Source: Zygnema circumcarinatum SAG 698-1b
Lineage: Eukaryota; Plantae; Zygnematophyceae
Length of the DNA stretch: 64,000 nucleotides
Assembly (NCBI GenBank): GCA_037447605.1
Contig: CM074815.1
Span: 2,232,001 to 2,296,000 of the forward strand
Reading direction: 5' to 3'
Shown here: in pieces, positions 15,601-50,434 of the stretch
How positions within the stretch are numbered: the first letter of the stretch is position 1
Layout: each line of letters opens with the position of its first letter
Notes under the pieces: model-generated
Databases searched by the model: none
What the model was told of the DNA's origin: nothing
The model's input: the letters and a program-made list of their open reading frames with translations, nothing else
Translations under genes and position numbers: made by a program

Positions 15601-15722
15601 AGTCTTGCGGAGTAATGGTAGATAATAGATGAAAAGCAGGTGATTTTAAGCGCGGCACCGTAGTTGAGGTACTTGTCCCGAGATTACGAGAGGGCTAGCG
15701 GGCCCTAATACGCATCTGCCCC

Positions 15723-21970: not shown

Positions 21971-24900
21971 ATGGAAACCTCCCCTCCCCCTCCCTCCTCC
22001 TCCCTGAAGCGCCAGCTGGCCGAAAACCCTAACAATGGGCGCGAGAAGCGGGTGGCGGCCTCGGAGGAGGGTTCAGCCCCCCCCACCGTCTCTCTCACTA
22101 GGGAGACCATATTCCGCCTGCTCTGCCCGGGCGGCAAGACGGGCTCCGTCATAGGGAAGGGCGGGTCCATAATAAAAGCCATAAGGGAAGAGACGGGGGC
22201 GAGAATCAAAGTTGCGGATGCGGTGCCTGGAACGGATGAGAGGGTGATCGTGATTTCTGCCAATGAGAGGGTGGAGGAGGATTGGTCTCCCGCGCAGGAG
22301 GGGCTGCTGAGGGTGCATGGGAGGATAGTGGAGGAGGGGGAGGGAGGGAGAGAGAGAGGAGGGGGGAGAGCGGGGGGGGGAGAAGGAGGTGGGGGGGAGG
22401 GAGGGGAGGGAGGGAAAGAGGGAGGGAGTGTGGTAGGGAGGATGCTTGTGGCGAGCAATCAGATCGGTTGTTTGTTGGGGAAGGGGGGCTCGATTATATC
22501 GCAGATGCGGAAGGAGACAGGGGCTCAGATTAGGGTTCTGCAGAAGGAGCAGCTGCCGGGGTGCGCCCTACCGTCGGACGAGCTTGTGCAGGTGGGCTGT
22601 GCTGAATTAGGGTTAGGGTTGAGATTAGGCTTGAAAGTAGAGTTTGGAATGAGGCTGGTGTAGAGTTGGGGAGGGGGGAAAGGTCAGGGAGAGAAGGGAG
22701 GGAGAGGAAGGGGTGATGGGGACAGGGGGACAGGACTCTTTTGCATCCACCTCTCCTTTTGAAAGCACCAATTCCTTAGGGGACAAGCCATCATTTCCCT
22801 CTTCTACTTTCACTCCCGCTCCCTATCTCTTTCTCCCCTCCTCTCTCGCCTACTGCTCCCAGATCTCTGGCTATTTCCCTCCTATCCTTTGTTCTCATCG
22901 CTCTCACTCTCTCTTCCCCCCCGTCCCCCCCACTCTGTCTCTCTTTCTAACCTCGTCCCCTCCCCCTGCCTCTCCTTCTCTCTCCCTTCCTCCCGCTCTC
23001 GCTCTCTGATCAAGTCTCCCCCCTCCATCCCCCTCTCCCCCTCGCCCGCTCTCTCTCTCTCTCTTTGATCCCCTCACTCCGCCTCCATCTCCCTCTCCCC
23101 CTCGCCCCCTGTTTCTCTTTGACCCCTTCCCCACTCCCCCTCCCTCTCCCTCTCCCTCTCCCTCTCCCTCTCTCTTTTGCCCCCCGCCCCCCCCCTCTCT
23201 CTCTCTGACCTCCCCCACTTCTTCTCCCTCTCTCCTCCCCGCCCCGCCCGCGCCCACTCCCTCTCTCTCTCTGACCTCCCTCTACCCCCCCTCCCTCTCC
23301 CTCTCTGACAGGTCACTGGCGAGCTGGACGCCGTGGTGCTCGCCCTAAAGGCCATCACCTCCCGCCTCCGCATGAACCCCCCCCGCCATGCCCCCTCCAT
23401 GGATGTCTCCCATGGCGGCATGCCCCATCTCCCCATGACCCATCACCATGCCCATATGGTCGGGCCCATCTTCCAGAGCCTTCCAGGAGGCGCCACGTCA
23501 GCCGTGGCCTCCTGGCAACCTATGCCAGGGCAGCACGTGGCACACTTGGGGCTCTCTTCGATGTCTGCGGTTTCTGGGAACTCCTACGAAGTGGTGTTCC
23601 GTATTTTGTGTAATGGAGCAAAGATCGGGAGTCTGATAGGAAAGGGGGGGTCGATTATTAAGCAGCTGCGGGAGGAGACCGGGTCAAGGATCAAAATTGC
23701 AGACGCTGTGCCGGACGTAGAGGAGCGTGTGGTTATACTTTCGGGAACTGAGGTGAGGGAGGGGGGAGGGAGAGAGCGGGGAAGGAGGGAAGGGGGAGGG
23801 AAAGAGGGAAGGGAGGGAGACGGGAAGCTGGGGAGGGCAGGGGATGGGGGGAGAGAGAGAGGGGAAGGGGGGGAAGGGGGGGAAGGGGAAGGGAGGGAGG
23901 GGGAGGTGAAGGTGGGGAGGGGGGGGGGGNNNNNNNNNNGCTCTGCCCGGGCGGCAAGACGGGCTCCGTCATAGGGAAGGGCGGGTCCATAATAAAAGCC
24001 ATAAGGGAAGAGACGGGGGCGAGAATCAAAGTTGCGGATGCGGTGCCTGGAACGGATGAGAGGGTGATCGTGATTTCTGCCAATGAGAGGGTGGAGGAGG
24101 ATTGGTCTCCCGCGCAGGAGGGGCTGCTGAGGGTGCATGGGAGGATAGTGGAGGAGGGGGAGGGAGGGAGAGAGAGAGGAGGGGGGAGAGCGGGGGGGGG
24201 AGAAGGAGGTGGGGGGGAGGGAGGGGAGGGAGGGAAAGAGGGAGGGAGTGTGGTAGGGAGGATGCTTGTGGCGAGCAATCAGATCGGTTGTTTGTTGGGG
24301 AAGGGGGGCTCGATTATATCGCAGATGCGGAAGGAGACAGGGGCTCAGATTAGGGTTCTGCAGAAGGAGCAGCTGCCGGGGTGCGCCCTACCGTCGGACG
24401 AGCTTGTGCAGGTGGGCTGTGCTGAATTAGGGTTAGGGTTGAGATTAGGCTTGAAAGTAGAGTTTGGAATGAGGCTGGTGTAGAGTTGGGGAGGGGGGAA
24501 AGGTCAGGGAGAGAAGGGAGGGAGAGGAAGGGGTGATGGGGACAGGGGGACAGGACTCTTTTGCATCCACCTCTCCTTTTGAAAGCACCAATTCCTTAGG
24601 GGACAAGCCATCATTTCCCTCTTCTACTTTCACTCCCGCTCCCTATCTCTTTCTCCCCTCCTCTCTCGCCTACTGCTCCCAGATCTCTGGCTATTTCCCT
24701 CCTATCCTTTGTTCTCATCGCTCTCACTCTCTCTTCCCCCCCGTCCCCCCCACTCTGTCTCTCTTTCTAACCTCGTCCCCTCCCCCTGCCTCTCCTTCTC
24801 TCTCCCTTCCTCCCGCTCTCGCTCTCTGATCAAGTCTCCCCCCTCCATCCCCCTCTCCCCCTCGCCCGCTCTCTCTCTCTCTCTTTGATCCCCTCACTCC

Positions 24901-26796
24901 GCCTCCATCTCCCTCTCCCCCTCGCCCCCTGTTTCTCTTTGACCCCTTCCCCACTCCCCCTCCCTCTCCCTCTCCCTCTCCCTCTCCCTCTCTCTTTTGC
25001 CCCCCGCCCCCCCCCTCTCTCTCTCTGACCTCCCCCACTTCTTCTCCCTCTCTCCTCCCCGCCCCGCCCGCGCCCACTCCCTCTCTCTCTCTGACCTCCC
25101 TCTACCCCCCCTCCCTCTCCCTCTCTGACAGGTCACTGGCGAGCTGGACGCCGTGGTGCTCGCCCTAAAGGCCATCACCTCCCGCCTCCGCATGAACCCC
25201 CCCCGCCATGCCCCCTCCATGGATGTCTCCCATGGCGGCATGCCCCATCTCCCCATGACCCATCACCATGCCCATATGGTCGGGCCCATCTTCCAGAGCC
25301 TTCCAGGAGGCGCCACGTCAGCCGTGGCCTCCTGGCAACCTATGCCAGGGCAGCACGTGGCACACTTGGGGCTCTCTTCGATGTCTGCGGTTTCTGGGAA
25401 CTCCTACGAAGTGGTGTTCCGTATTTTGTGTAATGGAGCAAAGATCGGGAGTCTGATAGGAAAGGGTCGATTATTAAGCAGCTGCGGGAGGAGACCGGGT
25501 CAAGGATCAAAATTGCAGACGCTGTGCCGGACGTAGAGGAGCGTGTGGTTATACTTTCGGGAACTGAGGTGAGGGAGGGGAGAAGAAAGAGCGAGGAAGG
25601 AGGAAGGGAGGAAAAAAAAGGAAGGGAGGAGGGAGACAGGAAGCTGGGGGAGGGCGAGGATGGGGGGAGAAGAGAGGAGGGGAAGGGGAAGGGGGAAGGG
25701 GAAGGGAGGGAGGGGAGGTGAGGTGGGGAGGGGGGAGGGGGAATGAAGGAAGTGGATGGAATGGAAGAAAAGAGGGAGAAAAGGGCAGAGGGTGGGCGGG
25801 AGGAGACGAGAGCGGGGACGAGGGAGGCAGTGATGATTGCTAATGCATGCCGGAAACTCAAAGTTTCATTCTTTCGAATGCATCCAGTAACCCAGCTGTC
25901 TTGTTTTTTGTTTCCTCTCTCGCACTCTTATCTCTCCCCCCTCTCTCTTACTCTCTCTCCCCTCCTCTCCTCCCTCCCAGATTCCGGGGTCCCAATTCTC
26001 CTCTGCCCAAGAAGCCCTCTACCGCATCCAAGCCATCCTCCTTGAACAGGAAGGCTTAGATGAGAATGGTCTCGCTACCACTCGCCTTCTCGTTCCGTCC
26101 AACCAAATCGGATGTCTTCTTGGAAAGGGAGGCTCCATTATCTCAGAAATGAGAAGAACTTCTCGCGCAAATATCCGCATTCTCCCCAAAGAACAATTGC
26201 CAGGATGTGCCCTAGAAAGTGATGAACTTGTGCAGCTCATGGGAGACCCTAATGCTGTAAGAATTGCCCTGCAGCAAGTCTCAAAAAGACTGCGAGCGAA
26301 CCCTCCGAGAGAGGGACCCAAAGAAGCAGGAGTGGGAGGGAGTCAGAATGCAGTGGTAGTGGGAGGAGGAGGAGGAGGAGAGAGCTACTTTTCGACTCCG
26401 AATTTTCCACAGGCTGGTAGTACGGTATATGGGCAGGTGGGAGGGGGAGGGAATTGGCATCATACTGAGAGTGCGGGAGGGCCCCCTCCCACTGCCCAGG
26501 GTCTCCTACTCCCTACCGCCGGTCTAAGGGGTCTTTCTACTATCAATGTTCAGGTCCCGGTAGCTTCAGTGGGTTCAATCATAGGAAAGGCGGGAGCAAA
26601 TATCGCACAAATTCGGAACATTTCGGGGGCGAGAGTGAAGCTCCATGAGGTGCAGGACGGTTCAGTTGAACGGACGGTTGAAATTTGCGGAACGGCGGAT
26701 CAGTTACAGGCAGCACAGAGCCTGCTGCAGGCATTCATCATAAGTGGGACTTCCGCAAGAGAGGGAGGAGGTGGCAGTGGAGGAGCGCCGTACTGA
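21971..26796 (+). CDS. Five-KH-domain RNA-binding protein (HEN4/RCF3-like plant family)
   Basis: Exons 21971-22591, 23312-23752 and 25981-26796. Five KH GxxG loops (GSVIGKGG, GCLLGKGG, GSLIGKGG, GCLLGKGG, GSIIGKAG). The first two exons are duplicated at 23940-25572. Confidence 0.9.
23940..25740 (+). other. Near-identical duplicate of 22120-23929 after a 10-N gap (probable assembly or haplotype duplication)
   Basis: Offset 1820 bp; starts exactly at the gap; G-run difference near 25463 breaks the frame. Confidence 0.8.
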
Positions 26797-29700
26797 AGGA
26801 GAGAGGGAGAGAGAGAGAGACAGGGAGAGAGATCTGAAAGAGGTAAGGGAGGTCATTGTTGCGTTTTTTTTTTTTTGTTTCCTCTCCCCCCCCATTTTTC
26901 CGATTCCCTTTTCCTTTTCTTCTTTCCTTATTTTTGACGCTGGTATGTGTGTGACTTTAAGAGGGCTCTATTGGAAATTATTTTGGGCACTTAAATTATT
27001 TAATTTTGGTCCACTTTTGTGATCCCAAATTAGCTATCGTTAACTGAAGTACTGCGGCTGACAGCATAGAAAGCCACTGCCCTTTTTTTTTTTCCGTAGG
27101 GGGGAGGAGAGGGAGATCGATTGCTGCCCGAAAAATTATAGACAGATTTTGACTCAGATAATTAGGCACATGGACTCTTAGGTCGTTATTGTCTTATATT
27201 TCGGTTTTTCCTGTAGGAAAATTTTACCAATCCGGAACCTTTATACACATAGAAACACAAGGCTTGAGACCCAAACATGAAGCCCAAAACTGAACAAACC
27301 TTTCCTTTCCTTTCTTTTCTACTTTTTACTTACTTTTCTTGGACATTCCGACCTAAAACTATGAACTTTTTGCATCGAAACATCTCCACATGCATATATT
27401 CAATCACGTTTTTTGCCTTCCGTACGCAATTGACTCATCAAACCGTGGTTGCCCTGCCCTTTCCCTCCCTCGCTCTCCCTTTCGCTTCCTCTCCCTCTCC
27501 CTCTCCCTCTCCCTCTCCCTCCCCCGCTCCCTCTCCCTCTCCCTCTCCCTCTCCCTCACCCTCTCCCTCTCCCTCGCCCTCTCCCTCTCCCNNNNNNNNN
27601 NCCCCCCCCCCCCCCCCCCCTTTCTTGGGGTTCTACCTTTTAAGTTTAGGGTTTGAGCTTTTTAGGGTTTCAAAGTTTAGGGTTTTGAGGGAGGTTATAG
27701 GGTTCAGGAGGGCGAGGTTTCAGACCTGTCCCCTTTTCCCCTCCCCTGCATTATGAAGCAGACCTTAGGTTAATGCAGGGTTCAGGTTCAGCGTTTAGAA
27801 TTTAGGGTTTCACGTTTAAGAGTTCTCTTGAAGGTAGGGGATGGCTTAAAATTTCTCATGTTTTGACTCAGGGAGTGACCAGGAGCCCCCAACCTTACCT
27901 TCTCTAATTCGGCAATAAAAAAAAGGAGAAAAAAAACTTGTTTTTTTCTTCAACTTCTAAAATGCCGCAGATTTGAGGAAACAATCGGAGGACGAAGGAA
28001 AAAACTAAAAAAGGGAATTTAAGATAAAATTAAGTGGTCAGGTGACCTATTCTGTGCTGAATTTTGACGGTGTTTTGCAGAAAACTCTACGTTGAGTTCT
28101 CTTCTATAGTGTCTTTGGTACCCTTTTTTTTTTTTTCGGAATATCTGCAGTTTGTTGTTTGAAGCATTTCTTTCAATTCTGTCTTCTTCCCTCCCTGGTC
28201 GCACGGACGCTGTTCTATGCACCTCGTTTCGTGTTATAACTGTTACTGGGTTTTGCTCAATTTCAGTGTGTTGCTGTTAGACGGTCTCTCTCTCTCACCC
28301 TCTCGCTCTCTTTCTGCCGCCCTCGTCTCTGTCCTGTTACTCTCACTCATAGCTAACAATGGCAATGCTTCATGCTCGATGTGAAATGACGAGAGGGACG
28401 GAGAGGGAGGGGAGGAGGGAGGAGGGGAGGGAGGAGGGAGGGAGGGAGGAGAGAGGAGGGAAGAGGGAGGAGAGAGGAGGGAGGAGGGAGGAGGGAGGAG
28501 GGAGGAGAGGAGGGAAGGGGGGAGGGAGGGGGGGAGGGNNNNNNNNNNAGGAGGGAGGAGAGGAGGGAAGGGGGGAGGGAGGGGGGGAGGGAGGGAAGGA
28601 GCATGGAGGGAGGAGGCAGAAGGGAGGAAGGGAAGGATGACGAAACAGGAAGGAAGGTTGTAGGAAGGAGGGAGGAGAAAGGAGGAAGGGAGGAGGGAGG
28701 AAGGGAGGAGGGAGAGGGCAGCAGGGAGCGGGGAGGAAAAAAGGGAGGTAAAGCTCATAGTTTTTGATATTTTTTCCGATTTTTTTTAGAAATTTCCATG
28801 TTTAGTGCTTGAGCAAGATCCGTTGAAATATTCGTCATTGGGGGCGGCCGACAAATAGACCTTTTTTTTCAATTTTCATCTTTTTCTGCTTAGGAAATAG
28901 CCTTAACCAAGTTATGGAGGGAAGATTGGGTGAGAGTGCGAAGTAAATTTCTTAACAAGCTTTTATTTCAGTTCATGTGCATATAGTATTTATACCTATT
29001 TTGCTTAGATTCCAGAGGAACTTTTTATTAGGGTTAGGTGTTGGCCCAGGGCAATTTGGAGAAAGCTAATACTTGTTCTATGTGTGGCTGACAGTTAGGG
29101 TTTCAGTTATCGTCTGATGACGGAAACTTGAACTTTTGTAACATTTTTTGTTCCTTTTTTTGTGCCCATTTTCTTGGTCTGAACTGAACTCAACTGAACT
29201 GAACTGAACTTGAAATGAATGGTGAAGGATGGGATGGGGGTTTGGACGAGGGCAAAAGCCCTAACCCCCCCCACTTATTTGGTATTTTATTTCACTTTGA
29301 AAATGTGCGCTCTTGATGTTGTGTGGATGCTTCCTAAAACTCCGGAAACCCTAAAAACCCTAAAACCCTAAATGACCTAAAAACCCTTAAAACCCTAAAA
29401 CCCTGAATGACCTAAAAACCCTAAATGCCCTAAAAGCCTAAAACCCTCAATGACCTAGAAACCCTAATTTCTCTAAAAACCCTCATTTTACCGAACTTCT
29501 CGGTGTAGATCATGGCGGGGCATCGAATTGCCGTTCGTTTAATTCGCAATACAAAATCAAAATCAGAGTGTGGCCTTCGGTTTCCATTAACGAGCACCAT
29601 TGTGACTTTATCACGCAGTTTCTTTCTACAAATTAACTTTACCGAGGTGGTAGTGCCAAAAAAACAGAATGCGGCCCAACAACGAGCTCGCGCGTGCACA

Positions 29701-30233
29701 TGCCAACCGTGACGTGACGTGACGTGACCGGCCGACGATTTTGTTCCTATGGCTGTTGCGTTTTTTTGTTTTTTGTTTTTTTTTTGCCCGTTTGGATGCC
29801 TTCCATACACACAGTTCTTTAGCATTAGCGGGTTCAAAAACAAGGTCAATAGGCCCTCCCTCCCTCGCGAGTGCGTGCGTGCGCCCATCGCTCGACGACC
29901 GACTCAACCGATTCTGGCAATTTCCGAACGGTTGTTGGACAGCGTACAACCAAATATGACGTCACATGACATGGCTTTTGAACAGTCGACCGGAACTGCC
30001 GCCGTCGAAAGGAACCGTTGCGTGCTCCGTGGAGAGGAAGCTTCCTCGAACCTGCCGCATTTCCTCCCACTCTCCCTCCCTGTCCCTCTCTCGCTCTCTC
30101 TCACACTCTCTCTCTCTCTTTCTCTCGCTCGCCCCAACCCAGGCGCAATGCAGCATTGCAGCGACAAGGAAAACTGTTTCCATGCACAGAAATCGAAAGA
30201 GATTTTTAGTTAGGCCTCCGTAGAACGGCCCAC

Positions 30234-31307
30234 ATGGAACTCAGGACTCTCCAGAGCCTCATTTTCTCGGCCTCATTTGTTGTGCTGTGGACCGCTGCGC
30301 AGGCGCAGCGCTACTCCCCATTTCAGGTCTTTTTTTTTTTTTCTTTCTATGCTGATTAGCATATTCGTTGAATTAAAAATTTATGGTTATCGAGATTCTC
30401 TTTTTTCTGCAAATGAATTTTGAAGTAAAAACAAATTATCGAATGAACATTGAACATGATCACTCTTAACCCTAATTTATTAATTTACGAATACGCCTTA
30501 AATCTAAAGAAACTCAACTGACTAATCGCACTCGGATGTGATTATGTTGACGAAATTTTTATTGAATTCAAACCCAATTCGTTCCTCTCCCCACTCTCTC
30601 GTCCTCTCCTCTCGCTATCTCCGTCCCTCTCCCACTACCCCCCGGCTTTCCCCCTCCTCTTTCTCTCTCCCTCTCCCTCTCCCTATTCCCCCCTCTCTCT
30701 CCCCCCCTCTCCCTCTCTCTCCCTCTTCCTCCCCCCCTCTCTGTCCCTCCCTTCTCCCTCTCTTTCTCTTCCTCTCCCCAATCTTTGTGCCCCCCTCTCC
30801 CTCTCTCTCTCCCTCTCCTTCTCTCTCCCTCTCCCTCTCCCGCCCTCTCTGTCCGCCCTCCCACTCTCTCCCTCTCCCCCCCTCCCTGTCTCCCCCTCTC
30901 CCTCTCCCTCTTCCTCTCCTTCTCCCTCCCTCTCCCTCTCTCGCTCTCCCTCTTCCCCCCTCTCTGCCTCCCCTCTCTATCCCTCTCTCTCCCTCTCCCG
31001 CCTCTCTGCCCCCCCGCTCTCTCCTCCTCTCCCTCTCCCCCTCTCTCTGTCCCCCCCTCTCTCTCTCCCCCCTCTCTCCCTCTCCCCCTCTCTCTGTCCC
31101 CCCGCTCTCGCTGTCCCCCCCTCCCTCTCCCCCCTCTCTCTCTCTCCCTCTCTCACCCCTCTCTCTCCCTCTCCAATTCAGGGGCAATTCAACACGTACA
31201 ACCCTGCAGACACACCCCACGTGGTTCTGACTGGCACTGGCCAGACCGCAACTGTGAACGTAACGGTGGTGCATGTGAAGGTCTATTTGGAGAAGCTGCG
31301 AGGCATC

Positions 31308-31389
<82 letters not shown>

Positions 31390-31765
31390 AAGATGGAACT
31401 TGATGCTTTGGAGCGCCTGGGTTCAAGATTTTTTCAATTTTAGGATTTTTCGGGGTTTAAGGCTTTTCTGATCCTTCAAGGTTGTGAGTTTTTTCGAGTT
31501 GCCGGGTTTTCAGGGTTGTGGGAATTTTAGGGTTTCTGTTTTTTGGGTTTTCCGGGACTTTCGGGATCTGTTTGAGTGCATGTGATGGATGGCCAATGGA
31601 ATTTAAAAAAAAAAAAAAATTCTTGAGAACTGCTAACCACATGGAGACGGAATTGTAATATCTTTGCAATCGCAGAACATTTGTACAATTTTGAGGCCAT
31701 TCTCTTCGTCACTTTCAGCTGGCGCGATCCTGCAGGTGAGTCATAATCTCAAGTCTCCATCCTTT

Positions 31766-31808
<43 letters not shown>

Positions 31809-32847
31809 GCCGTCTCCGTCCTCTCTCTCTCCCCTCTCACACTCTCTCCCCTCTCACACTCTCTCCCTCCCCCTCTCTTTCTCCCTCTCCCTCTCTCCCG
31901 CTCTCCTCCACTTTCCCTCTCTCTCTCCCTCTCTCTCTCCCTCTCTCATCTCCCTCTCCCCCTTTGCCCTTACCCGCTCTCCCTCTCCCCCTCTCTCCCT
32001 CTCTCCATCTCCCCCTTTTGCGGGCTCTTTTTCTCTCTCTCTCTCTCTCGTCGCTTTCGGTCTCAACCCTCACACACACACACACATCCCCTTAAACCCT
32101 AAACCCTGACAGCTTGACCTCCTTTGACTTTCCTTCAACTTCGCAGCATGGAACATCGTCAAGGATCGAAGCGCCGCAGTTTGGAATCCCAACGGAACTG
32201 AGAGCGTTGGCGCGAACGGAAACACGGACGCATGTAAACGGCGCTGCTCGCCGGCGGCCTTTCTGTGCTGCGACGCGATATGGCTCCCAACGACCGATCT
32301 CTTCAATGCAGAACGAGTACCTCAGAGCACATTCGAAGAGGGTATGTGAAAGTACCGATTTCGAACTCAACTTCAATTTGGATCTCTCCCAAAGGACTCC
32401 CTTTCTCTCTCTTTCTCTCTTCTCTCTCTCTTCTCTCCCTCGTTTTTTTTTTTTGAGTTTTTGAGTTAAGTGATTGTCTAGTTTTACATGCTAGGTAAGA
32501 TTGGATATATATATTTTTTCGCTTGTCTTATTCAGCGTCGGCGCCTAATTGGGTATAAATGGGGTAGTTCTCTGAATGCAGAATCGATTGTCTTTTGGAA
32601 CGGCTCTGTGGCCTGGGAGAGACGCATTCAGGGTACAACTGGAAAAATTTAACAACTTCCAAATCTCTGGAAACCTTAAAAACCAAAGAATTTGTAGTCC
32701 TCCCCCTCTCTCTTTCGCTCGCTCTCTCGATCTGTCCCTGCATCCCCTTCGTCTCTCTCACTTCCTCTCTCTCTCATTTACCCCGTCCTTCACTCCTGCC
32801 TCTCTTGCCTCTCTCTCCCTCTCTCTCGCTCGTCTCCCGTCCCCTGC

Positions 32848-32882
<35 letters not shown>

Positions 32883-35800
32883 GGCTTCCTCTCCCACTCC
32901 TTACCTCCCGCTTCTATGCAGTTATCCCTCCGTTTGTCTCCCTCCGTCAGGGCGTAACGCATCCTCCAGTTTTTACGGAAACTGTAACATTGTCCCACAT
33001 GTGACTGCCCTGTGCAGCCATCTTCTACACGCCGATGTCGTTTGTCAGTTTTCCGTTTGACAAACAGGTACTCATGTGAAAGCCTGCCCCTTCTCTCTCT
33101 CTCTCTCTCTCTCTTCCCCTCTCTCTTCTCCTCTCTTCTCTCCCCCACTCCTCATCCTCTCCCCTCCCTCTCTCGTTCTCTCCCACTACTTCTCTCGTTC
33201 CTCTCTCGCCCCGCATCCTCGCCCTCTCCTCTCTCTCCTCTCTCCCACTCTCCCTCACTCCCTCCTCTCTCTCCTTCCCCCTCCTCCGTTGACACACCTC
33301 CCCAAATAAAACCAATTCCAAAAAGCCTACGTGCAAACATCCCCTCTCAAATCCTTCCAATCTTCCTGACTAATTTCTGACTAATTTCTGACTAACATCA
33401 AACTAAGTGTGGCTAAACCTGAGCAGGTCCTGCAAATAGAGATGGGCAGCACGCAAGGCCGTACGATGTGGATCTACGTCCCGAGCAGAACTTCGGCGGA
33501 GATCAACTTTGCAGATACGGACAACGGCGAGATGCTGTCGGGATGGCGAGTCACTGGAATCGAGATCAAGTCGGGGCTGATCAACTACACACGTGTGGTG
33601 GACTCGGCGTCCTACTCGGATCCAAGTGAGTGGATCCTGGCGGCTTCAGAATCAACCACGATCGCTGGTATTGATCAAAGGCAGTGGGCCAGGGTTCAGA
33701 TTAGGGTTGGAGTTAGGGTTCAGATTAGGGTTTGGAGTTAGGGTTCAGATTAGGGTTGGAGTTAGGGTGCAGATTAGGGTTGGAGTTAGGGTTCAGATTA
33801 GGGTTGGAGTTAGGGTGCAGATTAGGGTTGGAGTTAGGGTTCAGATTAGGGTTTGGAGTTAGGGTTCAGATTAGGGTTCAAAATTAGTCTTTCTTTACGG
33901 TTTCAAAATCATGCTCTCCGCTTAATGTGTCTCATTTCTTCGATATTTTTGTTCTCTCCCTTCATACTGATCTGTCCGTTCTTTCTGACTTCTGCTCCGT
34001 TTCTATGTCCTGCGACTTCCGTTGCAGACGACCCTCTTCCGTTTAACGGAGATCCTTCCGTACGGAGGGCAGGGTGGGCCGAGGATTGGCCGTGGTCTCT
34101 GGATATTTCGGAGACAGTTTTTTTTGTTAATATTTACGTCAGCCGGCTTTCGTCATTCTATGTTTACAACGTAAAATTTTTAAAACCATTTTCTATTTTA
34201 AAACCCCCCTTGCTTTTTTTTTTCAATTTTGGCACCGATTTTGACGGTTTTTTTTCGTGATGAATCCGTCCTTTTAATGCTGAATCTGGACGTGATTTCG
34301 GACCAAATGCAGGCGATCATTCCGATGATGCTGACGGTCTCCCTGTCGTGGATCACCTTTTTGGTGGATCCGGAGAATCTTGATACACGTGTCACCACCA
34401 CAGTGGGTCTCTTCCTCGCCCTCACCGCTCTGCAACTCTTCATAAACAGCAAGGTACATTTTTCCTTTTTTTTTTTTGTTTTTTTTTTCCTTTTGATAAC
34501 CTCATTTTTTCCAGTTTTTTTTATTGATTTTTTTATTTTTTCAACAAAGAGAGGTTGCAGTTATTTATTTTTTCTATATTTATTTATTTATTTATTTCCT
34601 CTTGCAGCTCCCCTCCTCCTCCTACAGCACTCGCCTGCACAAGCTCGTGCTTTTGTCCTACGTGGCACTTGTAGTGGCCACGTGGGAGAGCCTCTTCGTG
34701 CACTACCTCTCCCGCAAGGTAGAGCTCTCTCCTTCTTCTCTCTCTCCCTCTCTCTCTCTCCCACTCTTTCTCCCTCTCTCCCTCTCTTTCTCCCATTCTC
34801 TCTCCCTCTGGCTCTCTCCCCCCTCTCTCTCTCCCTCTGCCTCTCTCTCCCCCCCTCGCTCTCTCACACCTGAAACTTTTGCCGTTTTCTCTCCCACTTC
34901 CCTTACTTCCCTCCTCTCTCCTCTCCCTCCTCCCTCTCCTTTCCCTGCTCCCTCCCCTCCCTCGCCCGTCCCTAATCTCCCTCCCTCCCTCCCTCCCTCC
35001 CACTCCACTCCCTCCCTCCCACTCCCTCCCTCCCACTCCCTCCCTCCCACTCCCTCCCTCCCACTCCCTCCCTCTCACCCCTCCCTCTCACTCCCTCCCT
35101 CCTCACTCCTCCCCTCTCCCTCCATACATTTCTCTCTCCCCCTCTCTCTCCCTCTCTCTCATCGCAGGATGTTCGTCGATTTGAGAAAAAATCCACAGAA
35201 CTAAAACTTGCCGCAGCAGCGAAACGGAACGAGTACATGGCATCTCTCGTGGATGAAGCATTAAATGCAGGCCGTACAACTCATCATTACCCCTCAGAAC
35301 AGTCCGAAAACGGGTCCTACTTTAAACGGAAATCCGTTTCTATGCTACGGAAAGCGTCTGCTTCCCTGAGATTTTTTTTCTCAGAAAAAGAAAAAAATTC
35401 CGAAATCGAGGAAGAAGGAGGCGAGCTTTTTCATTTGAAGACTGAAAAAAAAAAAGACGACGAGAAAGAAAAAATTCGAGAACGAAATTTTGATGATGTC
35501 GAGAGCGGTTCTATGATAAAGAAATCGACGAGATCGATTCTTAAACTGAAACTGAACGGAGAGGAGCATAGAAACACGGAAATTTCGAGCTCGTTACGTT
35601 TCCGTCCTTTGTCTCAAAGCTCTCGAATGTCGTCTCTTTCTTCGACTTCGTCCCCCCGGGCAGCCGATGAAAGTTTTACCTCCGACATGTGGGGGTCCAA
35701 AAAAGTAGAAAAAAGTGCTCAATATTATCTCGAAGATGTGATCGAATTTAAGCTTCACCCGTCGCATTTTCCTTTAGCCGAAAGGCCGAGGAGGTACGGA

Positions 35801-37982
35801 GAGTGGTTAGGGTTAAGCACGGCTGCTTATCTTTGGTCTTTTTTCTATAAGAAATCGATTAAAGTGCTGGGAAAATTTCAGTATGTGAGATTACCTAATG
35901 AATTGGAGGAACTTTATCGCAGAGCAGTTGGGTATAATAAGGGAAAAAGCGAGATCGAGTGGGGGGGAGAGAGAGAGGGAGAGGGAGAGGGAGAGGGAGT
36001 CGGAGTGGGAGAGGGAGAGGGAGTGGGAGAGGGAGAGGGAGAGGAGAGGGAGGGAGAGGGAGAGGGAGAGGGAGAGGGAGAGGGAGAGGGAGGAGTGAGA
36101 GGGGGGGTTGAAGGGAAAGTGAAGAAGGGAAGAATTCAGAAGAAGACAATTCAGGGGTTTGTGTTAGTGGAATGTGGGGGACCAGAAAGTGAAAAGTTTG
36201 AAAAGAAAAAAGATTTTGTGAATGTGTGGGAGTGGAAGCTGATGAGCAAATTCTGGGAACGGAGGAGGAAAGAGAGGGAGAGGAAAATTGAGGAGGAAAA
36301 AAAGGGTATGCGAAAAAGGGATTTGGAGAGGAAGCTGACCGCTATGAAGGACTGGAAAAGTGAAAAAAAGAGAAGGGAAAAAGAGTATAAAAGAATGGTG
36401 CAGGAAATACGGAAAAAAAAGAGAGAAGATTGGTTCAAAATGGTGACTTTGCGGAGGAAAAAAGGGAGAGAAGGGGACCAGATTAGTAATAAAAATTTAG
36501 GATTGAATTCAAGGGAGAATGAGGCCTTAGATTTAGGGTTGGGTGGAGGAGAGGTAGGAGAGGGAGAGGGAGAGGGAGAGGGAGAGGGAGAGGTGGGAGA
36601 GGAAGAGAGTGGGAGACGTGTGGGAGTGGATGGAGGCAGGGGCGTGAGAGAAAATGGTGGGAGAGGAAGGAGAGAAGAAAGGGGTGAGGGAGTAGAGGAT
36701 GGTGGAGGGAGAGGAAGGAGAGGGGAGGATGGTGGGAGAGGAGGGAGAGAGGGCGCAGAGGAAGACAGTGGGAGGAGTGGGCTGACAAGTTTCGATGTGA
36801 TGGAAGTTTCCAACGATTTCATTGACGAGGTTAAGCCCGAACCCGCTGCCCTCCCCTACTTCATTCCTTCAGCCATTCTGCCTTCTGCGCGCTTTCTCTT
36901 CCTCTCTCTCTTTCTCTCTCTCTCTCCCTCCCACTTCCTCCATTCCCCTCTCCCCACTCCCCCTCTCCCTCTCTCCCTCTCCCCTCTCCCCCCTCCCCCT
37001 CTCCCCTCTCCCCTCTCCCCCCTCCCCCTCTCCCCTCTCCCCTCTCCCCTCTCCCCTCTCCCCTCTCCCCTCTCCCCTCTCCCCTCTCCCCTCTCCCCTC
37101 TCCCCTCTCCCCTCTCCCCTCTCCCCCTCTCCCCTCTCCCCTCTCCCCTCTCCCCTCTCCCCTCTCCCCTCTCCCCTCTCCCCTCTCTCCCTCTCTCCCC
37201 TCTCCCCTCTCCCCCTCTCCCCTCTCCCCTCTCCCCTCTCCCCTCTCCCCTCTCCCCCTCCCTCTCCCCTCTCCCCTCTCCCCTCTCCCCTCTCCCCTCT
37301 CCCCTCTCCCCTCTCCCCCTCCCCTCCCCCTCTCCCCTCTCCCCCTCTCCTCCCCCTCTCCCCTCTCCCCTCTCCCCTCTCCCCCTCTCCCCCTCTCCTC
37401 TCCCTCTCCCCTCTCCCCTCTCCCCTCTCCCCCTCTCCTCTCCCTCTCCCCCTCCCCCTCTCCCCCTCTCCTCTCCCCTCTCCCCTCTCCCCTCTCCTCC
37501 CTCCCTCCCTCCCTCCACCCCCAATGGAATCTCATTGCCCCCTCTCCTCCCTCCATCGCTCCCCCCCCTTCCCGCCCTCTTGCAGGTTAACCTCTCCCCC
37601 TCCCTCTCCCCCCCTCTCTCCCTTCCTCCCCCCCCCCCCCGCCACTAAATCTCAACCTCCCTTCCCCTCCCCTCCCCTCCCCTCCCTCTTGCAGGCCAAC
37701 CTCTCCCTCTCCCTCTCCCTCTCCCTCCCCCCCCCTCCCTCCCCTCCCTCCCCCCCTCCCGCGGTCCCTTCCCGAAGCCTCCGCGCTGTGGAGCGCAAGG
37801 CCCGGCGGTGGCACGCTTCGCACGTGCGGCGAGTCGCCCGGCAAATGCGGCGACTCGAGGCGGAGATGCGGCGGATGGAGGACCCCGCGCGCGTGTCACG
37901 TCACACCCGAACGGTGGATCTATGCAGCCTCGTTCTGTTCCCAGTTGCGTACATCGCGCTCGCGCTCTGGATGCTCATGTAG
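30234..37982 (+). CDS. Cys-less (Pro-loop) pentameric ligand-gated ion channel subunit, ~1000 aa
   Basis: Phase-consistent GT-AG exons: 30234-30326 (signal peptide), 31182-31311, 31676-31735, 32147-32341, 32582-32632, 33018-33067, 33427-33625, 34028-34170, 34313-34453, 34608-34718, 35168-36829, and a last exon ending 37982. Motifs [38 protein letters not shown]; M1 [17 protein letters not shown]; M2 [19 protein letters not shown]; M3 [18 protein letters not shown]; M4 [20 protein letters not shown]. Confidence 0.9.
33690..33880. repeat. Intronic 24-bp telomere-derived tandem repeat (GGAGTTAGGGTTCAGATTAGGGTT)n
   Basis: About 7 copies visible in the pLGIC intron. Confidence 0.85.
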
Positions 37983-38777
37983 CGGGGGGGGGGCGGTTCC
38001 GTGGGAGGGGACGGAACGGAACGGAACGCGAGACGGAACGGGGATTGGGAAAAGGTATGTAAGAATAACGGACGGGTGGTGTAGGTTTAGGGTTTAGGGC
38101 TTGGGGTTTAGGATGAAGGGTTTGGGGTTCAGGGTTTTAGGGTTTGGGATTTAGGGTTTGGGGTTTAGGGTTTAGGGTTTGGGGTTCAGGGTTTAGGGTT
38201 CAGGGTTTAGAGTTGGGGGGATTTGAGGGTTGAAAAAGTTTTAGCATGGAGGGAGGGCCCTGTGCCTATAGCTCGTCTGGAGGACATATATTTATTGCTT
38301 GACTATATGTACTATTGAGGATTGAAGTGTACATATATGTATTTCTATTTCTAGGGATTAAATTTTTCACTTTTGTGATTGGCTACCGCGTAGGGTTTTG
38401 GAGATTTGAGGTTTTCGGGGTTCACGAGAATAGGATTTACTATTTGCTCACCAAAAATATGTACCAAGAAGATTTTTTTTTTTGGGTGAAATAAACTGTT
38501 TGCAATGTCGACATCTGATTTGAAGTACATAAATTGCACTTCTGTCAAGAATCTATGCCCCTCTCGTGTGCGCCCCCAAAACCCTTCTCACAAACCCTAA
38601 AAACCTTTAATTACCCTATTTTTCTCAAATCCTAAACCCAGGAAATAAACAATCTTTGCATTTTTTGAAACCTCGACCGCGACTAAAAATTAGGCTCAAT
38701 TGAACCCAAAATATAAAAAAAGAAAGCACTCCACAGAAACTAAAAAAATCCACATTTTTCCCCATCCAATTTCTCCG

Positions 38778-40500: not shown

Positions 40501-42732
40501 AAGAGAGAGTCTTTTGGCAAGACGCTGTGCACCTGGTCATGTGAACCGAGTTCGAGGTCGGGGCCAAAGTATCGCTCTTGGAGCTCATTCACAGTCTGCA
40601 ATCATTACAGCCATTATTGCTTGTTGATTTTGACGTTGACTTTGACTTTGACTTCAGTAAATGGACAATCACGATGACGATGGCCATGATCTGCAAGGCC
40701 GGATGACCGCTCACTTTCCCCCTCTGTCTCCCTCTCCCTCCCACTCCCACTCTCTCTCCCCCTCCCGCTCTCTCCCACTCTCCCTGCTTCTCTCCCTCTC
40801 TCTCTTTCCCACACTCCCTATCTTCACTTCCTATCTCCCCTCCAACTCACACAGAAAGCAAGGTCCCATATACACGTGACTTCAAAAGGCTTAAATTACA
40901 TAGTTTGTAATTAAATTCGACAAACCCATAGTTGCCATCCGGACTATGTTGTTAATATTTTCCATTTACCATCCTTAACTCACACATTTTATCTTTTCTC
41001 AAAATTAGAGCTCCCATACCAGCAAGCGCTCGTCCTCAAGTGGCCAATCGAGCGCATCTGCAACGGCTCGAGCAGTCATTTGCGTACGACTGAACGGAGA
41101 AGCATAGATCCGCACACGGCTCAAGGGAATGCCTTCAGCTTCTAAAGCCTGCAGGATATGCATGCAGGGTTCAGGGTTCAGGGTTCAGGGTTTAGGGTTT
41201 AGGGTTCAGGGTTCAGGGTTCAGGGTTCAGGGTTTAGGGTTTAGGGTTCAGGGTTCAGGGTTCAGGCTTTAGGGTTTAGGGTTCAGGGTTCAGGGTTCAG
41301 GGTTCAGGGTTCAGGGTTTAGGGTTTAGGGTTCAGGGTTCAGGGTTCAGGGTTTAGGGTTTAGGGTTTAGGGTTGGTTCAGGGTTCAGGGTTCAGGGTTT
41401 AGGGTTTAGGGTTCAGGGTTCAGGGTTCAGGGTTCAGGGTTCAGGGTTCAGGGTTTAGGGTTTAGGGTTTAGGGTTTAGGGTTTAGGGTTTAGGGTTCAG
41501 AGGTTAGGTTAGGGTTTAAGGTTCAGGGTTTAGGGTTGAGGGTTTAGGGTTCAAGATTTAGGAGGATTGAGGGTTTAGGATTGAGGGTTTAGGGTTCAAG
41601 GTTCAGGTTCAGGATTCAAGGTTCAAGAAACAAGGTTCAGGATTCAGGGCCCTGAGTTTGAAGTTCAGGATTCAGGGATTCAACGTCTTGAGTTCAATAT
41701 TTACGGTTCAGGGTTTAAGATTCACTGTTTAGGGTTCAGAACTTATGAAGAATTTGAGCTTCAGGGTTCAGAAAATAGGGCCTGTGTTAGTTTCTAACAG
41801 AAACCTCAGGGTTTATTGTTCAAGAGTTAAGGTAAAGAAAAAAAAAGGGGTTTAGGGTTCAGGGAAGCCCCCTGACCTCCCTGAACTTGAGGCCTGCCGC
41901 CGCCGCCTGCTCGAGCCCTAAAGGCGCCAGTCCGTACTCTGCCAGCTGGCCGTTCGCCTGCAAAGCACTGGCCGCCCCCTCAATTTGCTTAAAATGAAAT
42001 ATTTACACAAAATAAGGGACTAGCTTGAAGCCCTGACGAGGCGAGCAGGGCAAATTTTTAGGGTTTCCCTGTACTTAGGGTTCACAGTTTTCGAGGCAGT
42101 AGGGTTTCTAGGGTTTGCCAACATTAGGGTTTCGGGTTCAAATGCGTCAACATTAGAGTTTAGGGTTTTAGTATAACAAAACTGGGTTTAAGGTTTTTAG
42201 CTAGACAGCTTTAGGGTTTAGGGTTTTAGTGCGGAAAAATTAGGGTTTAGGGTTTGAGCTTTACAGAATCAGGGTTCAGGGTTTTAGTGCGGCAAAATTA
42301 GAGTTTTGAGTTTGAGTTTGACAAAATCAGGGTTTAGGGTTTTAGCCTCTCTACCAGCGAGCTGACGATGCGGTTGGCCTCATTGGCGCGGCTCCGGCCG
42401 TGCCGCAGCAGCCAGTAGCGGTTGGACAGCTGGCCCCCGCCCGGGCCCCCCAGCGCGCTGAACCCTAAACCCTCCGCCACGTCAGCAGCCTGCGCGGGCC
42501 GCCCAGCGAGCAGCCCCGCCATGGCCGCGATCAGGGCGCGGCGCGAGAAGGGAGGCGCGCTGTCGTCGTTTTGCGGGTCCGGCTGCAACCGGCAAGTGAC
42601 ACGTGGCAAAGTGCCACGTGGCGGACGAGGAGTGGGGAGGGGGGGTAAGGGTGGGAGAAAGGGAGAGGCGCTGCCGCCACGTGTCAGCAGGAGGGGAGAG
42701 GAGAGGAGGTTGCCACGTGGTAGGGCAGCCAT
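38778..42732 (-). CDS. Histidine phosphatase / phosphoglycerate-mutase-like protein with a predicted bipartite plastid/Tat presequence
   Basis: Spliced motifs NRYWLLRHGRSRANE, ENGQLPQYGLAPLGLEQA, YASPFSRTQMTA, LQERYFGPDLEL, GGESVVDVSRRV, HAILFVSHGDTLQILQ; stop at 38778. Confidence 0.88.
39041..39940. repeat. 10-bp minisatellite (GGTCAATGGR)n in the last intron of the PGM-like gene
   Basis: Regular to ~39600, then progressively degenerate. Confidence 0.95.
41168..41560. repeat. Intronic mixed (TTCAGGG/TTTAGGG)n telomere-like array
   Basis: Directly visible 7-mer tandem repeats. Confidence 0.92.
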
Positions 42733-44749: not shown

Positions 44750-46845
44750 CTAAACTGAGGGTCCTAGAACCCCTGTCCCTCTTGTTAGTTTCCCCAACAT
44801 ATTTGCAGCCTCAGCATGGGATTGGTCTGCCGCCTTTGTGAGCATTTTCACCGCTCGTTCCATGTCCTTTTGAATGATTCCGTTCCCGTTAGCAAAAATC
44901 ACGCCCAACTGAAACTGTGCGTGTGCATATCCTTGATCCGCCGCCTTTTGAAGCAACTCTACAGCGCGATTCATGTCTTGTGTAACACCATCACCGGTCA
45001 TGTACAGTATCCCTAAATTGAACTGAGCCAAAGGATAGCCATTCTCTGCAGCGTGCATAAAAAGCTGAACGGCCCGTTCTATGTCCTTGGGGACTCCATC
45101 TCCCATAGCGTAGCTCGCACCTAAATTGATCTGGGCATCAAAATCGCCATTTTCTGTAGCGCACATATATAGTCGAACGGCCCGTTCCATGTCCTTGGGG
45201 ACTCCATTTCCGTTAGCGTAGCACCAACCTAAATAGGACTGCGCATCACTGTCTCCCTGATCCACTGCCTTTTGAAGCAACTCTACACCGCGATTCATGT
45301 CTTGTGTAACACCACTACCGGTCATGTACATTCGCCCTAAACTGCACTGGGCCATAGGATGGTCATTCTCTGCAGCGCGCATGAAAAGCTGAGCGGCTCG
45401 TTTTATGTCCTTGGGGACTTCATATCCGTTAGCGTAGCACACACCTAAATTGAACTGGGCTGCAAAATTGCCATTCTTTGCAGCGCGCATATAAAAGTGA
45501 ACGGCCCGTTTCATGTCTTGGAGGACTACATCTCCGTTCTCGTAGCACACACCTAAATTGAACTGAGCCTCATGACAGCCATTCTCTGCAGCACGCATAA
45601 AAAGCAGAACGGCCCGTTCCATGTCCTTGGGGACTCCATCTCCGATAGCGTAGCACACACCTAAGAGGAACTGCGCATCACTGTCTCCCTGCTCCGCCTT
45701 AATCCTGTATTCACGCACCATCTTCGGCTCGGACGGCAACTCTTCTTCTTCTTTTTTTCCACTCCCCCAAAATTCCCAGAACTTTTTTGTTCCTTCTTTT
45801 TCGGGTGCAGGCGTTTGTGCTGATCCTATTGACTCCGGTTGCTTTCCCTTCTTTGCATCCTTTGCTGCTTTTTCCAACCGAGGCAGCACATCGCTCTCAA
45901 GACTTGGGCGAAGAGACCTCTCCTCCTCCACGCACTGCAGTGCCACGTGGAGAGCTGCCTTCGTTGACTCCCGCCCCCACTCCCCTGCCTGCGGGTCCAA
46001 CTTTACCATGAAGATAGCTGCTGCCTTCTTCAAATCGAGCTTTGAATGAGCTGGCCCGCACTTCTCAAGGAGTCCATGAACGTTCTGAATATTAGGGTCG
46101 CCCGTGAGCAGCTGCAAAATGATGAGGCCGAGGGCGTACACGTCGGCAGTGGCTGTGAGCAGTCCCTTTCGTGCATGCTCTGGTGCGATGTACCTATCAG
46201 CAGGCAGAAAGCGGGGGAATTCGGGGAGATGAATAAATCCCGTCATTGTAAGAAAGCAGAGGATGACGTTAAGGAACAAGAAATAGATTGGAACATGATG
46301 TACCCGAAAGTGCCTGCCTTATTGCGTGTTTGGATTGTGCCGTCGAACATTCGAGCCAGGCCCATGTCCGCCAGCTTGGAGGTGAGGTTTCCGTCCAATA
46401 GCACGTTCTCCGGCTTCAAATCGCGGTGTATGATTCCTTTCTTATGCATAAACAAGAGAGCGGATGCCATTTCGGCAGATATTCGGATGCGGTCCGCCCA
46501 ACCAAGGGGGGGAAACTTGGCAGCAGGGCCGCTCAGGCGGTCCTGGAGGCTTCCTCCGCTCATGAGCTCGCTCACAATGCAGCGCGCTTTGGGGCACCAT
46601 CCCATGAACTGTAAAATGTGGGGATGGCGCAGCCTGCTTAAAGCCGCCACCTCCTTCTCAAGTCCCGTCATAGACTTGCCCTCCTGCAGTCTCTTTACCG
46701 CCACAGGGGTGCCGTGCAGCTTGCCTTTGTAGACCGATCCAAAGCCTCCTTCTCCGAGCAGGTTTGTCTTGGAGAAGCGGTCGGTGATCTCCGCAATAAG
46801 GCTTTCCGAGAAGGTGTCAGCAGAGACATTGTGGGCCGTGTCCAT
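44750..46845 (-). CDS. RLK/Pelle-type cytoplasmic Ser/Thr kinase fused to ~8 Sel1-like repeats
   Basis: Exons 46845-46304 and 46193-44750. GEGGFG, VAVK, HRDLKPEN, DMG, GTFG|YIAPE, DVYALG, then 36-aa AQFxLGxxYxxGxGVxxDxxRA repeats. Confidence 0.92.
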
Positions 46846-47349
46846 CAGAGGGAGGGAGAGAGGGAGGGAGGAAGGGAGGGAGAGCGATACAGAGAGAGAG
46901 GGGGAGAGACAAAGGGAGAGAGAGGGGAGAGGGGAGAGGGAGAGAGAGGGGTGAGAGGGTGAGAGGGTGAGAGGGAGAGGGAGAGAACTGGAGAGCGAAA
47001 GAGAGCGAGGGAGTGGGAGGGCGAGGGAGCGAGAGAGCGAGAGAGGGAGAGGGAGGGAGAGGAGGAGAGAAGGGATGAAACGATGACAGGGTTACGGGCA
47101 CGGTCGATGCTTCCTCCATACAGACCGTACAATAAGTACAGTACTGTACAGTACCAGATGTACGATTCGATTCGTACAGATCGGTGCAACGGAACGGTAT
47201 CCGATTACGGCGGAGCGTGTTCTATGTCGTGTCATTTACGATTTAACAAACCGACTGTTCTATGAAAATGTTTACGAAATTCGCAACAGGTGACCATGTG
47301 ACTGCTTCTCTCTCTCTCTCTCTCTCCCTCTCTCGCTCTCTGTCTCTCC

Positions 47350-48408
47350 ATGGAGGAGGCAGCGGAGGAACATTCTCATGAAGAGAGTGACGATGTCGCA
47401 GGCGGATTTGCCGACAGCAGAGGTCCGCGCCATGCAAAAAACGATTTATAAAGAAAAATTAACGAAGAAGTAAACGAGGAATTTAAGATAAGAGCACGAG
47501 GAGCTGAAGGAAAACGAATGTCGACCTTTCTGACGGAAATAAATAAATAAATGTCAAGCATTGGCGCTCGCCTTTGGAAACAATTTTTTTCCCTCAATCG
47601 CCCCCCCTCCACCTCCCTCCTTTTTATTTTTAATTTCAACTTTTTTAGGGTTTCCAGGACGCGGCAAAAAGTCGTTGACTTCTCATCCGCGGCGGCACAT
47701 CGCGCTGCAAATCATGTACCTCGGAGGGAGGTACTCTTTCTGAATTCTCCCCCTTTTTTGGTCATCTTGTGCCCCAAAAACCCTAAGTCTGAATCCTAAA
47801 CCCTAAACCCAAAACACTAAACCCCAAACCCTAAATCTTAACCTTTAACCCTGAAATTTAGGCCCTAAACCCTAACCCTAAATCCTACACCCTAAATCCT
47901 AAACCGTTCCTTGATACACCACCGTTCCATGTGCTGCATTCTAGATACTTTGGGTTCGCATCGCAAGAGGGGTCAAAGCCGACAGTCGAGGTGAAAGCCC
48001 TCTCCCTCCTCCTCTCCCTCTCTCCCACTCCCTAACCCACACCTCATTCATCCTCCCTCTTCCCACCCCCCTCCCCTTCCTCCCTCCTCCCTCCTCCCCT
48101 CTCCCCTCTCTCGCTTCCACCCTTCCACATCTTTGTTCCCTCCCCTCCTCCCTCTCTCCCTTCTCTTCCCCTCCTCCTTCCTCTCTCCACTCTCCCTTCC
48201 CCTCTCCTCCCCTCTCCTCTTTCTCCCTCCCCACCTCTTCCCCCTCCTCCCTCCCCCTCTCTCACGCAGCCTCCTCGCCTCTCCCGCAGAGGGAGCTGTT
48301 TGCAGCTTTGGAGCGAACAAAGCTTCTGATTGGCAGCCGGCCGGAGGCGAACTATTCGCGATGTGGCCGCACTGACAAAGGGGTCAGCGCGCACTGCCAG
48401 GTAGAAGG

Positions 48409-48444
<36 letters not shown>

Positions 48445-50397: not shown

Positions 50398-50434
<37 letters not shown>

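Follow-up and report, generated by a model that had tools for sequence, protein, structure and literature searches.

Within the genome of the zygnematophycean alga Zygnema circumcarinatum SAG 698-1b we analyzed a stretch of 64,000 nucleotides (assembly GCA_037447605.1, contig CM074815.1, positions 2,232,001 to 2,296,000 of the forward strand), called "the window" below, in which positions are counted from the first nucleotide. At its center lies a gene predicted to encode one of the subunits of a pentameric ligand-gated ion channel, the superfamily to which the neurotransmitter receptors of animals belong. A KH-domain gene and a gene with kinase and Sel1 domains lie on either side, among abundant repeats (Table 1).

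The region 30000-38200 contains short conserved coding blocks between CT-rich low-complexity stretches. The gene model was built from its three forward-frame translations, with the blocks joined at canonical sites. The twelve exons give a joined frame of 3123 nt that opens with an ATG at 30234, ends in a single terminal stop (37980-37982) and encodes 1040 residues; all eleven introns run from GT to AG. An earlier interpretation made without database searches (the sequence-only reading) had described a complete 12-exon gene with a signal peptide, and the present model bears it out, with an intact frame and the same start and stop. The signal peptide, with its hydrophobic h-region, was read at residues 1-25. 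Its AQ cleavage context has a counterpart at the matching alignment position of the relatives; past the predicted cleavage site, the alignment carries on over the junction of exons 1 and 2 through the PFQ/GQ motif. From this context (AQ..PF.GQ) to the last membrane segment, M4, the predicted protein is collinear with 12 relatives. All exon junctions but that between exons 11 and 12 fall in gap-free parts of the alignment (10 of 11), and the codon that exons 7 and 8 share encodes Asn, as in the N/A-DP motif of the family. For exon 12, the acceptor at 37695 was chosen because it is the sole acceptor that keeps the frame into M4; an alternative at 37586 was rejected when its frame ran into a stop.

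Sequencing runs provide a further view of the locus. DNA runs from three studies of one organism, six in all, contain 74-85% of the words sampled from the stretch. Another eight runs, whose kind is unrecorded but which are probably RNA to judge from their transcriptome-like contig totals, contain 42-49%. Exons make up 40% of the sampled stretch, or 19% if exon 11 is left out, and the comparison of these fractions with the run shares is suggestive only.

Table 1. Coordinates of the channel gene exons and of other features in the window
Feature	Position	Strand	Content
Exon 1	30234..30326	+	Start codon and signal peptide, residues 1-31; GT donor
Exon 2	31182..31311	+	N-terminal strand(s) of outer domain; 17-residue insert relative to homologues
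Exon 3	31676..31735	+	Conserved Y.FEA...SW.D block; Y78, F80, S89, W90 and D92 kept
Exon 4	32147..32341	+	Four-cysteine motif C124, C128, C135, C136, then loop A IWLP...DLFNA, residues 139-149
Exon 5	32582..32632	+	Outer-domain strand ahead of Pro-loop
Exon 6	33018..33067	+	Pro-loop with Thr181; block aligns to the same block of ELIC
Exon 7	33427..33625	+	Second half of outer domain, LSGW block; carries Leu195
Exon 8	34028..34170	+	End of outer domain, conserved pre-M1 Arg299, start of M1
Exon 9	34313..34453	+	M1 and M2; LDTR at -3' to 0', Leu342 at 9'
Exon 10	34608..34718	+	M2-M3 linker LPSSSY and M3
Exon 11	35168..36829	+	554 codons, bulk of M3-M4 intracellular span
Exon 12	37695..37982	+	Ser/Pro-rich linker, Arg-rich amphipathic helix before M4, M4, stop codon
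Degenerate 24-nt TTTAGGG derivatives	33690-33880		In intron 7 of the channel gene
Retroelement remnants	14392-17840	-	705-residue stop-free stretch with gag-type aspartyl protease, then a reverse transcriptase-RNase H piece
Direct duplication	22120-23929 vs 23940-25741
Direct duplication	47066-49047 vs 49058-51037
Direct duplication	61969-62840 vs 63129-64000
KH-domain exon	25891-26793
10-N gaps	27592-27601; 28539-28548		Between the KH gene and the channel gene, inside tandem repeats
TTTAGGG arrays	38086-38192; 41191-42463; 55642-56266; 61981-62341; others
Protein kinase C-lobe and eight Sel1 repeats	44753-46318	-	One long exon; Pfam Sel1 E 2e-78

Channel features and family membership

Hydropathy identifies four membrane segments, M1-M4, at residues 307-327, 333-352, 366-386 and 1017-1040. 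In the outer domain, loop A is followed by the Pro-loop FPFD (188-191), which has the aromatic-Pro-aromatic-Asp motif, and Arg299, in the pre-M1 segment SRLSS, occupies the partner position of the Pro-loop Asp. F188, P189 and R299 fall in columns that are invariant in the family, and D191 lies within the FPFD motif but outside the invariant columns. The Pro-loop motif and the pre-M1 Arg were both defined as family features by Jaiteh et al. (2016, PMC4795631). M2 begins with LDTR (330-333) and not with the anion-type PAR, as the sequence-only reading had it. Ungapped alignment of exon 9 to M2 of GluCl sets Arg333 at 0', which gives Asp331 at -2', Thr332 at -1', Gly339 at 6', Leu342 at 9' and Ser353 at 20'.

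Counting from FPFD against the nicotinic receptor loop, we take Thr181 and Leu195 to stand at the two Cys-loop cysteine positions, where the strict metazoan Cys-loop has two cysteines 13 residues apart. A polar residue paired with a hydrophobic one at these positions is the pattern of prokaryote-type Cys-less channels (PMC4795631). Loop A, a Pro-loop without flanking cysteines, M1-M4 and the 9' Leu, all of which the sequence-only reading had listed, were thus found at the positions it gave. The term "Cys-less" is, however, true of the Cys-loop only: the protein carries four cysteines directly before loop A. Three of them (C124, C135 and C136) occupy invariant columns of nine full-length relatives, while C128 is without variation only in the first alignment, of eight sequences. 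Across the green-algal subfamily the pattern reads C..RC and then CC, with the vicinal pair directly ahead of D.IWLP. The four cysteines may form disulfides that substitute for the Cys-loop bridge in stabilizing the outer domain.

Several lines of evidence place the protein in the pentameric channel superfamily. Exon 9 matches positions 2-46 of the Pfam profile Neur_chan_memb (expectation value, E, 5.7e-4), and exon 12 matches positions 173-232, the M4 end, at E 0.14. Against the PDB, all 14 matches of exon 9 are pentameric channels (GluCl, GABA-A gamma-2 and glycine alpha-1 among them) in the M1-M2 register, at E 0.12-1. A phmmer search with exon 9 of 1.84 billion representative proteins found 14 at E 0.001 or better, the best of them 56% identical. 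Over residues 61-389 the spliced protein and the Chlorokybus relative P0001 share 35% identity (E 1e-57). Against a profile of eight green-algal relatives the spliced protein scores 332 bits (E 4e-103, residues 48-421), as compared with a maximum of 5.5 bits for 200 shuffles of the same protein. A further match, a weak one, joins it to the M4 end of the family profile (E 1e-05).

The relatives themselves tie the subfamily to the known channel domains. Of nine that were scanned against Pfam, eight match Neur_chan_memb, five of them above the curated cut-off (P0001 scores 48.3 bits; cut-off 28.1), and five match Neur_chan_LBD, three of them above its cut-off of 26 (P0001, 31.1; P0003, 29.7; P0014, 34.9); one relative, P0002, matched neither profile. 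The search for both domains that the sequence-only reading had proposed thus finds the membrane domain in exons 9 and 12 of the gene itself and the ligand-binding domain by way of the relatives. A profile of the relatives reaches ELIC, GLIC, GABA-A and glycine receptors in the PDB, where it matches 246 distinct sequences; the best 60 of the 246 are all pentameric channels. The best match is ELIC (E 8e-22), aligned in two stretches, from loop A to the Pro-loop and from pre-M1 to M3. For the Chlorokybus relative, structure prediction gave a model of low confidence (mean predicted local distance difference test score, pLDDT, 54.8) in which strands and helices follow one another as expected. With this low-confidence model as query, Foldseek matched at least 500 chains of the PDB (E 0.001 or better). 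The best 50 matches listed are all chains of pentameric channels, at about E 1e-12 and with a template modeling score of only about 0.4; the support from fold is qualitative.

Conservation within the family points the same way. Nine full-length relatives have 42 columns without variation, and the predicted protein keeps 37 of these, including Phe-Pro in the Pro-loop, Arg before M1, Pro in M1, the M2 core, Leu-Pro between M2 and M3 and the M4 Asp (D1020). The five that changed are P to A54, R to K69, V to I73, R to T156 and T to G339. Judged on sequence, membership of the Cys-less branch of the pentameric ligand-gated channel superfamily is firm.

All of the relatives that carry a species name are green algae (Chlorokybus atmophyticus, Spirogloea muscicola, Chloropicon primus, Botryococcus braunii and Chlorella variabilis), and the Chloropicon protein is annotated as a "ligand-gated ion-channel protein". 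Of these, Chlorokybus and Spirogloea are nearest to the Zygnema gene. The remaining relatives are metagenome or Logan contigs. A word search with the family alignment returned five proteins only, being swamped by low-complexity words, and is not a survey of distribution. In a maximum-likelihood tree of 13 rows the gene groups with the Chlorokybus and Spirogloea sequences and two sequences of unrecorded source, with an ultrafast bootstrap of 91 and an SH-aLRT (Shimodaira-Hasegawa-like approximate likelihood ratio test) value of 92, though the branching inside the group is not settled. The chlorophyte sequences fall outside it. The phylogeny with algal homologues that the sequence-only reading had suggested as a check therefore returns a clade with streptophyte members.

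The marks of the green-algal Cys-less subfamily, namely the four cysteines, the FYTPMSF..FPFDKQ loop, the M2 core and LP.SSY, are all present in the gene, whose sole departure in M2 is Gly339; the sequence of M2 hardly varies within the subfamily, most of whose members have Asp at -2'. To the Chlorokybus (649 and 652 residues) and Spirogloea (518 and 529 residues) proteins the likeness extends through the four-cysteine motif, FYTPMSF..FPFDKQ, M2, LP.SSY and the M4 Asp, at 35-38% identity over the outer domain and M1-M3. The same proteins differ from the Zygnema protein at M2 6', where they have Thr and it has Gly, and in the length of the span between M3 and M4 (145-269 residues as against 638). 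The gene is an old paralogue or a distant orthologue of the Chlorokybus and Spirogloea genes and not a close copy of them. The two Chlorokybus proteins, P0001 and P0017, have consecutive gene identifiers (1688 and 1687) on scaffold Chrsp127 and are 60-66% identical.

More distant systems set the gene in context. The chlorophyte Cys-less receptors of Chloropicon, Botryococcus and Chlorella variabilis, although outside the group formed by the gene and the streptophyte sequences, share its Pro-loop and M2 signature at 29-33% identity. Cys-less Pro-loop receptors were reported from Chlamydomonas and Chlorella by the 2016 survey (PMC4795631). The best solved relatives are ELIC (Erwinia/Dickeya) and the proton-gated GLIC (Gloeobacter), which likewise lack the Cys-loop cysteines. 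Unlike the Zygnema protein, these bacterial channels have about 320 residues and are without an intracellular domain, a context of signal peptide and introns, or the four-cysteine motif. GLIC has Glu at -2' and ELIC has Glu at -1', whereas the Zygnema protein has Asp at -2' and Thr at -1'. The animal Cys-loop receptors (nicotinic, 5-HT3, GABA-A, glycine and GluCl) share its fold, topology, M2 register and 9' Leu, and their intracellular M3-M4 domain ends, as here, in an amphipathic helix before M4. Identity to them is below 20%, however, and the Zygnema protein lacks the Cys-loop disulfide and the Gly-Glu-Lys/Arg or Pro-Ala-Arg motif.

We conclude, with a probability of roughly 85%, that the locus is a nuclear gene, rich in introns, encoding one subunit of a Cys-less (Pro-loop, prokaryote-like) pentameric ligand-gated channel, and that it belongs to a subfamily confined, as far as we have seen, to green algae, and within it to a group of streptophyte sequences. 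The predicted coupling core is kept (Pro-loop Pro and Asp, pre-M1 Arg, M1 Pro and M2-M3 Leu-Pro), as is the hydrophobic 9' Leu at the gate. By homology with the family, five subunits would assemble into a plasma-membrane channel, and an extracellular small ligand or ion would bind at the subunit interfaces of the beta-sandwich domain. The signal would then pass through the Pro-loop and the M2-M3 interface, and the M2-lined pore would open at the Leu 9' gate. Permeation of cations is the likelier guess, given that Asp is conserved at -2' and no Pro-Ala-Arg motif is present; Glu at -2' likewise favors cations in GLIC. The hint that LDTR gives is weak, however: Spirogloea has Ala-Ala-Arg, and the survey denies the motif's predictive value in protist channels. 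Nearly all other members have Asp-Thr/Ser-Arg at -2' to 0', the positions where the Spirogloea copies P0006 and P0016 carry Ala-Ala-Arg, and the selectivity for ions may have changed among the streptophyte members.

Several observations weigh against this conclusion or parts of it. Gly339 stands at M2 6', where the family has an invariant Thr. The outer-domain exons, searched singly, have no Pfam match, so that membership of Neur_chan_LBD rests on the link through the relatives. The predicted protein is itself absent from the protein libraries, as the exon 9 search returned no self match, and a pattern spanning the exon 10/11 junction was not found in metagenome contigs. The selectivity motif was found not to be predictive in protist channels (PMC4795631), which bears on the cation guess. 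Exon 11, considered in the next section, supplies further objections. As for the ligand, our hand alignment to ELIC places a Thr at the loop-B position of its amine-contacting Phe, an aromatic residue that the gene does not conserve; a classical amine agonist therefore cannot be assumed.

The Gly at M2 6' and the four other changes at family-invariant positions would also suit an unexpressed relic, a recently silenced paralogue from a small local gene family that has no present function, and losses of the family are frequent in unicellular lineages (PMC4795631). Yet the reading frame stays open through all 12 exons and 1040 codons, the splice sites are all canonical, and the 37 invariants that are kept include every residue of the coupling core. 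Also, the GC content at third codon positions (GC3) is 0.68 in the core exons, which looks like selected codon use, and the word shares in the likely RNA runs fit the exon fraction. We consider such a relic improbable and retain the channel subunit as the explanation.

Exon 11 and the intracellular span

The span from the conserved M3 Glu to the M4 Asp measures 638 residues in the Zygnema protein, as against 63-269 in the full-length relatives, and is thus at least 2.4 times that of any relative seen. Most of it is encoded by exon 11. The reading frame of this exon has no stops, where the other two frames have 32 and 28, and none of 5000 shuffles was free of stops; exon 11 is certainly a maintained open frame. 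Its first residues, DVRRFEKK, continue the basic motif that follows M3 in Chlorokybus. A single-sequence fold prediction is mostly of low confidence, apart from one helix of about 94 residues rich in Lys, Glu and Arg (residues 741-834, pLDDT 83-96). The span, which apart from this charged helix and the Arg-rich helix before M4 is for the most part predicted to be disordered, most likely serves regulation or anchoring rather than gating.

The remaining objections to the model come from the composition of exon 11. Its codon use is unlike that of exons 1-10: GC3 is 0.46 as against 0.68, third-position C is 0.11 as against 0.36, and Lys is encoded by AAA and AAG in a ratio of 42:17, compared with 2:7. 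It has no Pfam match, no match to the family profile and no usable look-alike in the Atlas, and the true product may differ at this exon. A word search with the intracellular loop found nothing, swamped as it was by low-complexity words. The Gly and Glu runs of exon 11 correspond to a reverse-strand reading of the CT-rich repeats that fill the introns.

These properties raise the question of whether the channel is real but exon 11 is not constitutive, being instead a cassette exon or a stretch with unrecognized introns, in which case some of the product would be short-looped like the relatives. The exon is symmetric (phase 0-0), and therefore a form without it would remain an in-frame channel, with an M3-M4 loop of about 75 residues. 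The short spans of the relatives, the divergent codon use, the mirrored repeats and the lack of any match to a relative or the family would all agree with such a form. On the other side stand the 554 stop-free codons, which the shuffles never reproduced, and the start of the exon, which carries on a motif common to Chlorokybus. The 42-49% of words held by the likely RNA runs is also nearer to the exon fraction with exon 11 than without it, although this is suggestive only. We think a non-constitutive exon 11 unlikely, if distinctly less so than a silenced gene, and keep the 12-exon channel subunit as the model.

Host lineage and the loss of the family in plants

The interest of the gene depends on its host. 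A condition of the sequence-only reading was a host from the green lineage, and both the channel and its neighborhood agree with one: the channel's relatives are green algae, and the KH-domain exon on the same scaffold has its named best matches in ferns, Selaginella, seed plants and Mesostigma (44% identity). The plant matches are RCF3, HEN4 and At4g18375-like proteins; the library search with this exon found no self match. A coccidian or chromerid host, which the TTTAGGG repeats, CT-rich introns and Gly/Glu runs had at first suggested, was rejected in view of the green-algal relatives and the land-plant matches of the KH gene. Two 10-N gaps part the channel gene from this plant-type neighbor, the distribution of the family is patchy and transfers have been proposed (PMC4795631), and the closest solved relative by sequence is the bacterial ELIC. 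A foreign, contaminant contig, or a gene recently acquired by horizontal transfer and without bearing on the plant lineage, would account for these facts. However, the same tandem repeat continues across the gap at 28539, and the eleven spliceosomal introns are filled with the CT-rich and TTTAGGG-type repeats that occur across the whole window. Moreover, the nearest relatives are streptophyte and chlorophyte algae and not bacteria, and DNA runs of the same organism from three studies contain the stretch. A foreign origin is therefore the least credible of the alternatives, and we regard it as extremely improbable; the channel gene is best treated as a resident of a streptophyte genome.

In the survey of Jaiteh et al. 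(PMC4795631), Cys-less channels occur in Chlorophyta and in no multicellular plant, with streptophyte algae outside its coverage. A 2024 review (PMC11085791) likewise describes land plants as without the family and places the loss somewhere in the streptophyte lineage. Both sources agree with the statement of the sequence-only reading that the family is present in chlorophytes and absent from land plants. In the library searched we found no paper on the family in streptophyte algae, including Klebsormidium. Among the 14 whole-library matches of exon 9 there is no land-plant protein, at a sensitivity of about 45% identity or more in M1-M2, and this result supports the absence of the subfamily from annotated land-plant proteomes.

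The proposal that the gene marks a late loss of the family on the way to land plants stands in part. The streptophyte clade and the plant-type neighbor speak for it, but the evidence is not unique to this gene, as the annotated public proteomes of Chlorokybus and of Spirogloea, itself one of the Zygnematophyceae, already hold family members. A loss after the split of the Zygnematophyceae is supported by these distributions; the gene strengthens what could already be inferred from public data. Taken with its Chlorokybus and Spirogloea relatives, it confines the loss to the branch that led to land plants. The gene thus refines the timing of the plant loss and is not a new kind of channel.

A fuller scenario can be sketched, which we offer as tentative and would sooner doubt than accept. 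Streptophyte algae would have kept a distinct Cys-less clade, marked by the four cysteines and an Asp-Thr-Arg pore entrance, up to the sister group of land plants, and the family would have been lost at the origin of embryophytes. The Zygnema paralogue would in addition have acquired an intracellular module of its own lineage, about 550 residues long and with a charged helix of about 94 residues, that would tie the channel to cytoplasmic partners. If this is true, its intracellular domain exceeds twice the length of that in any relative seen. Because the relatives are already public, the value of the gene is incremental, and lies in a well-supported gene model, a definition of the subfamily and an unusual intracellular insert. 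The algal channels also form a clonable set for asking what a channel of the neurotransmitter-receptor type does in a relative of plants: which ligand it binds, which ions it passes and what behavior it serves.

Neighboring genes and repeats in the window

On the same gap-free contig as the channel gene lies the kinase-Sel1 gene of Table 1, in which the combination of a kinase with Sel1/TPR repeats is unusual; look-alikes in the Atlas gave weak leads only. In three places a stretch of 0.9-2 kb is directly duplicated, with 98-100% identity between copies that adjoin at a 10-N gap, and one of these duplications doubles an exon of the KH gene. They look like contig overlaps left unmerged in the assembly rather than real tandem duplications. 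A search of the window against Rfam gave no match, and an exact look-up of a retroelement open reading frame found none on record. Interstitial arrays of the plant-type, telomere-like repeat TTTAGGG are dense in the window, with 126 forward and 34 reverse copies, and retroelement remnants lie at 14392-17840.

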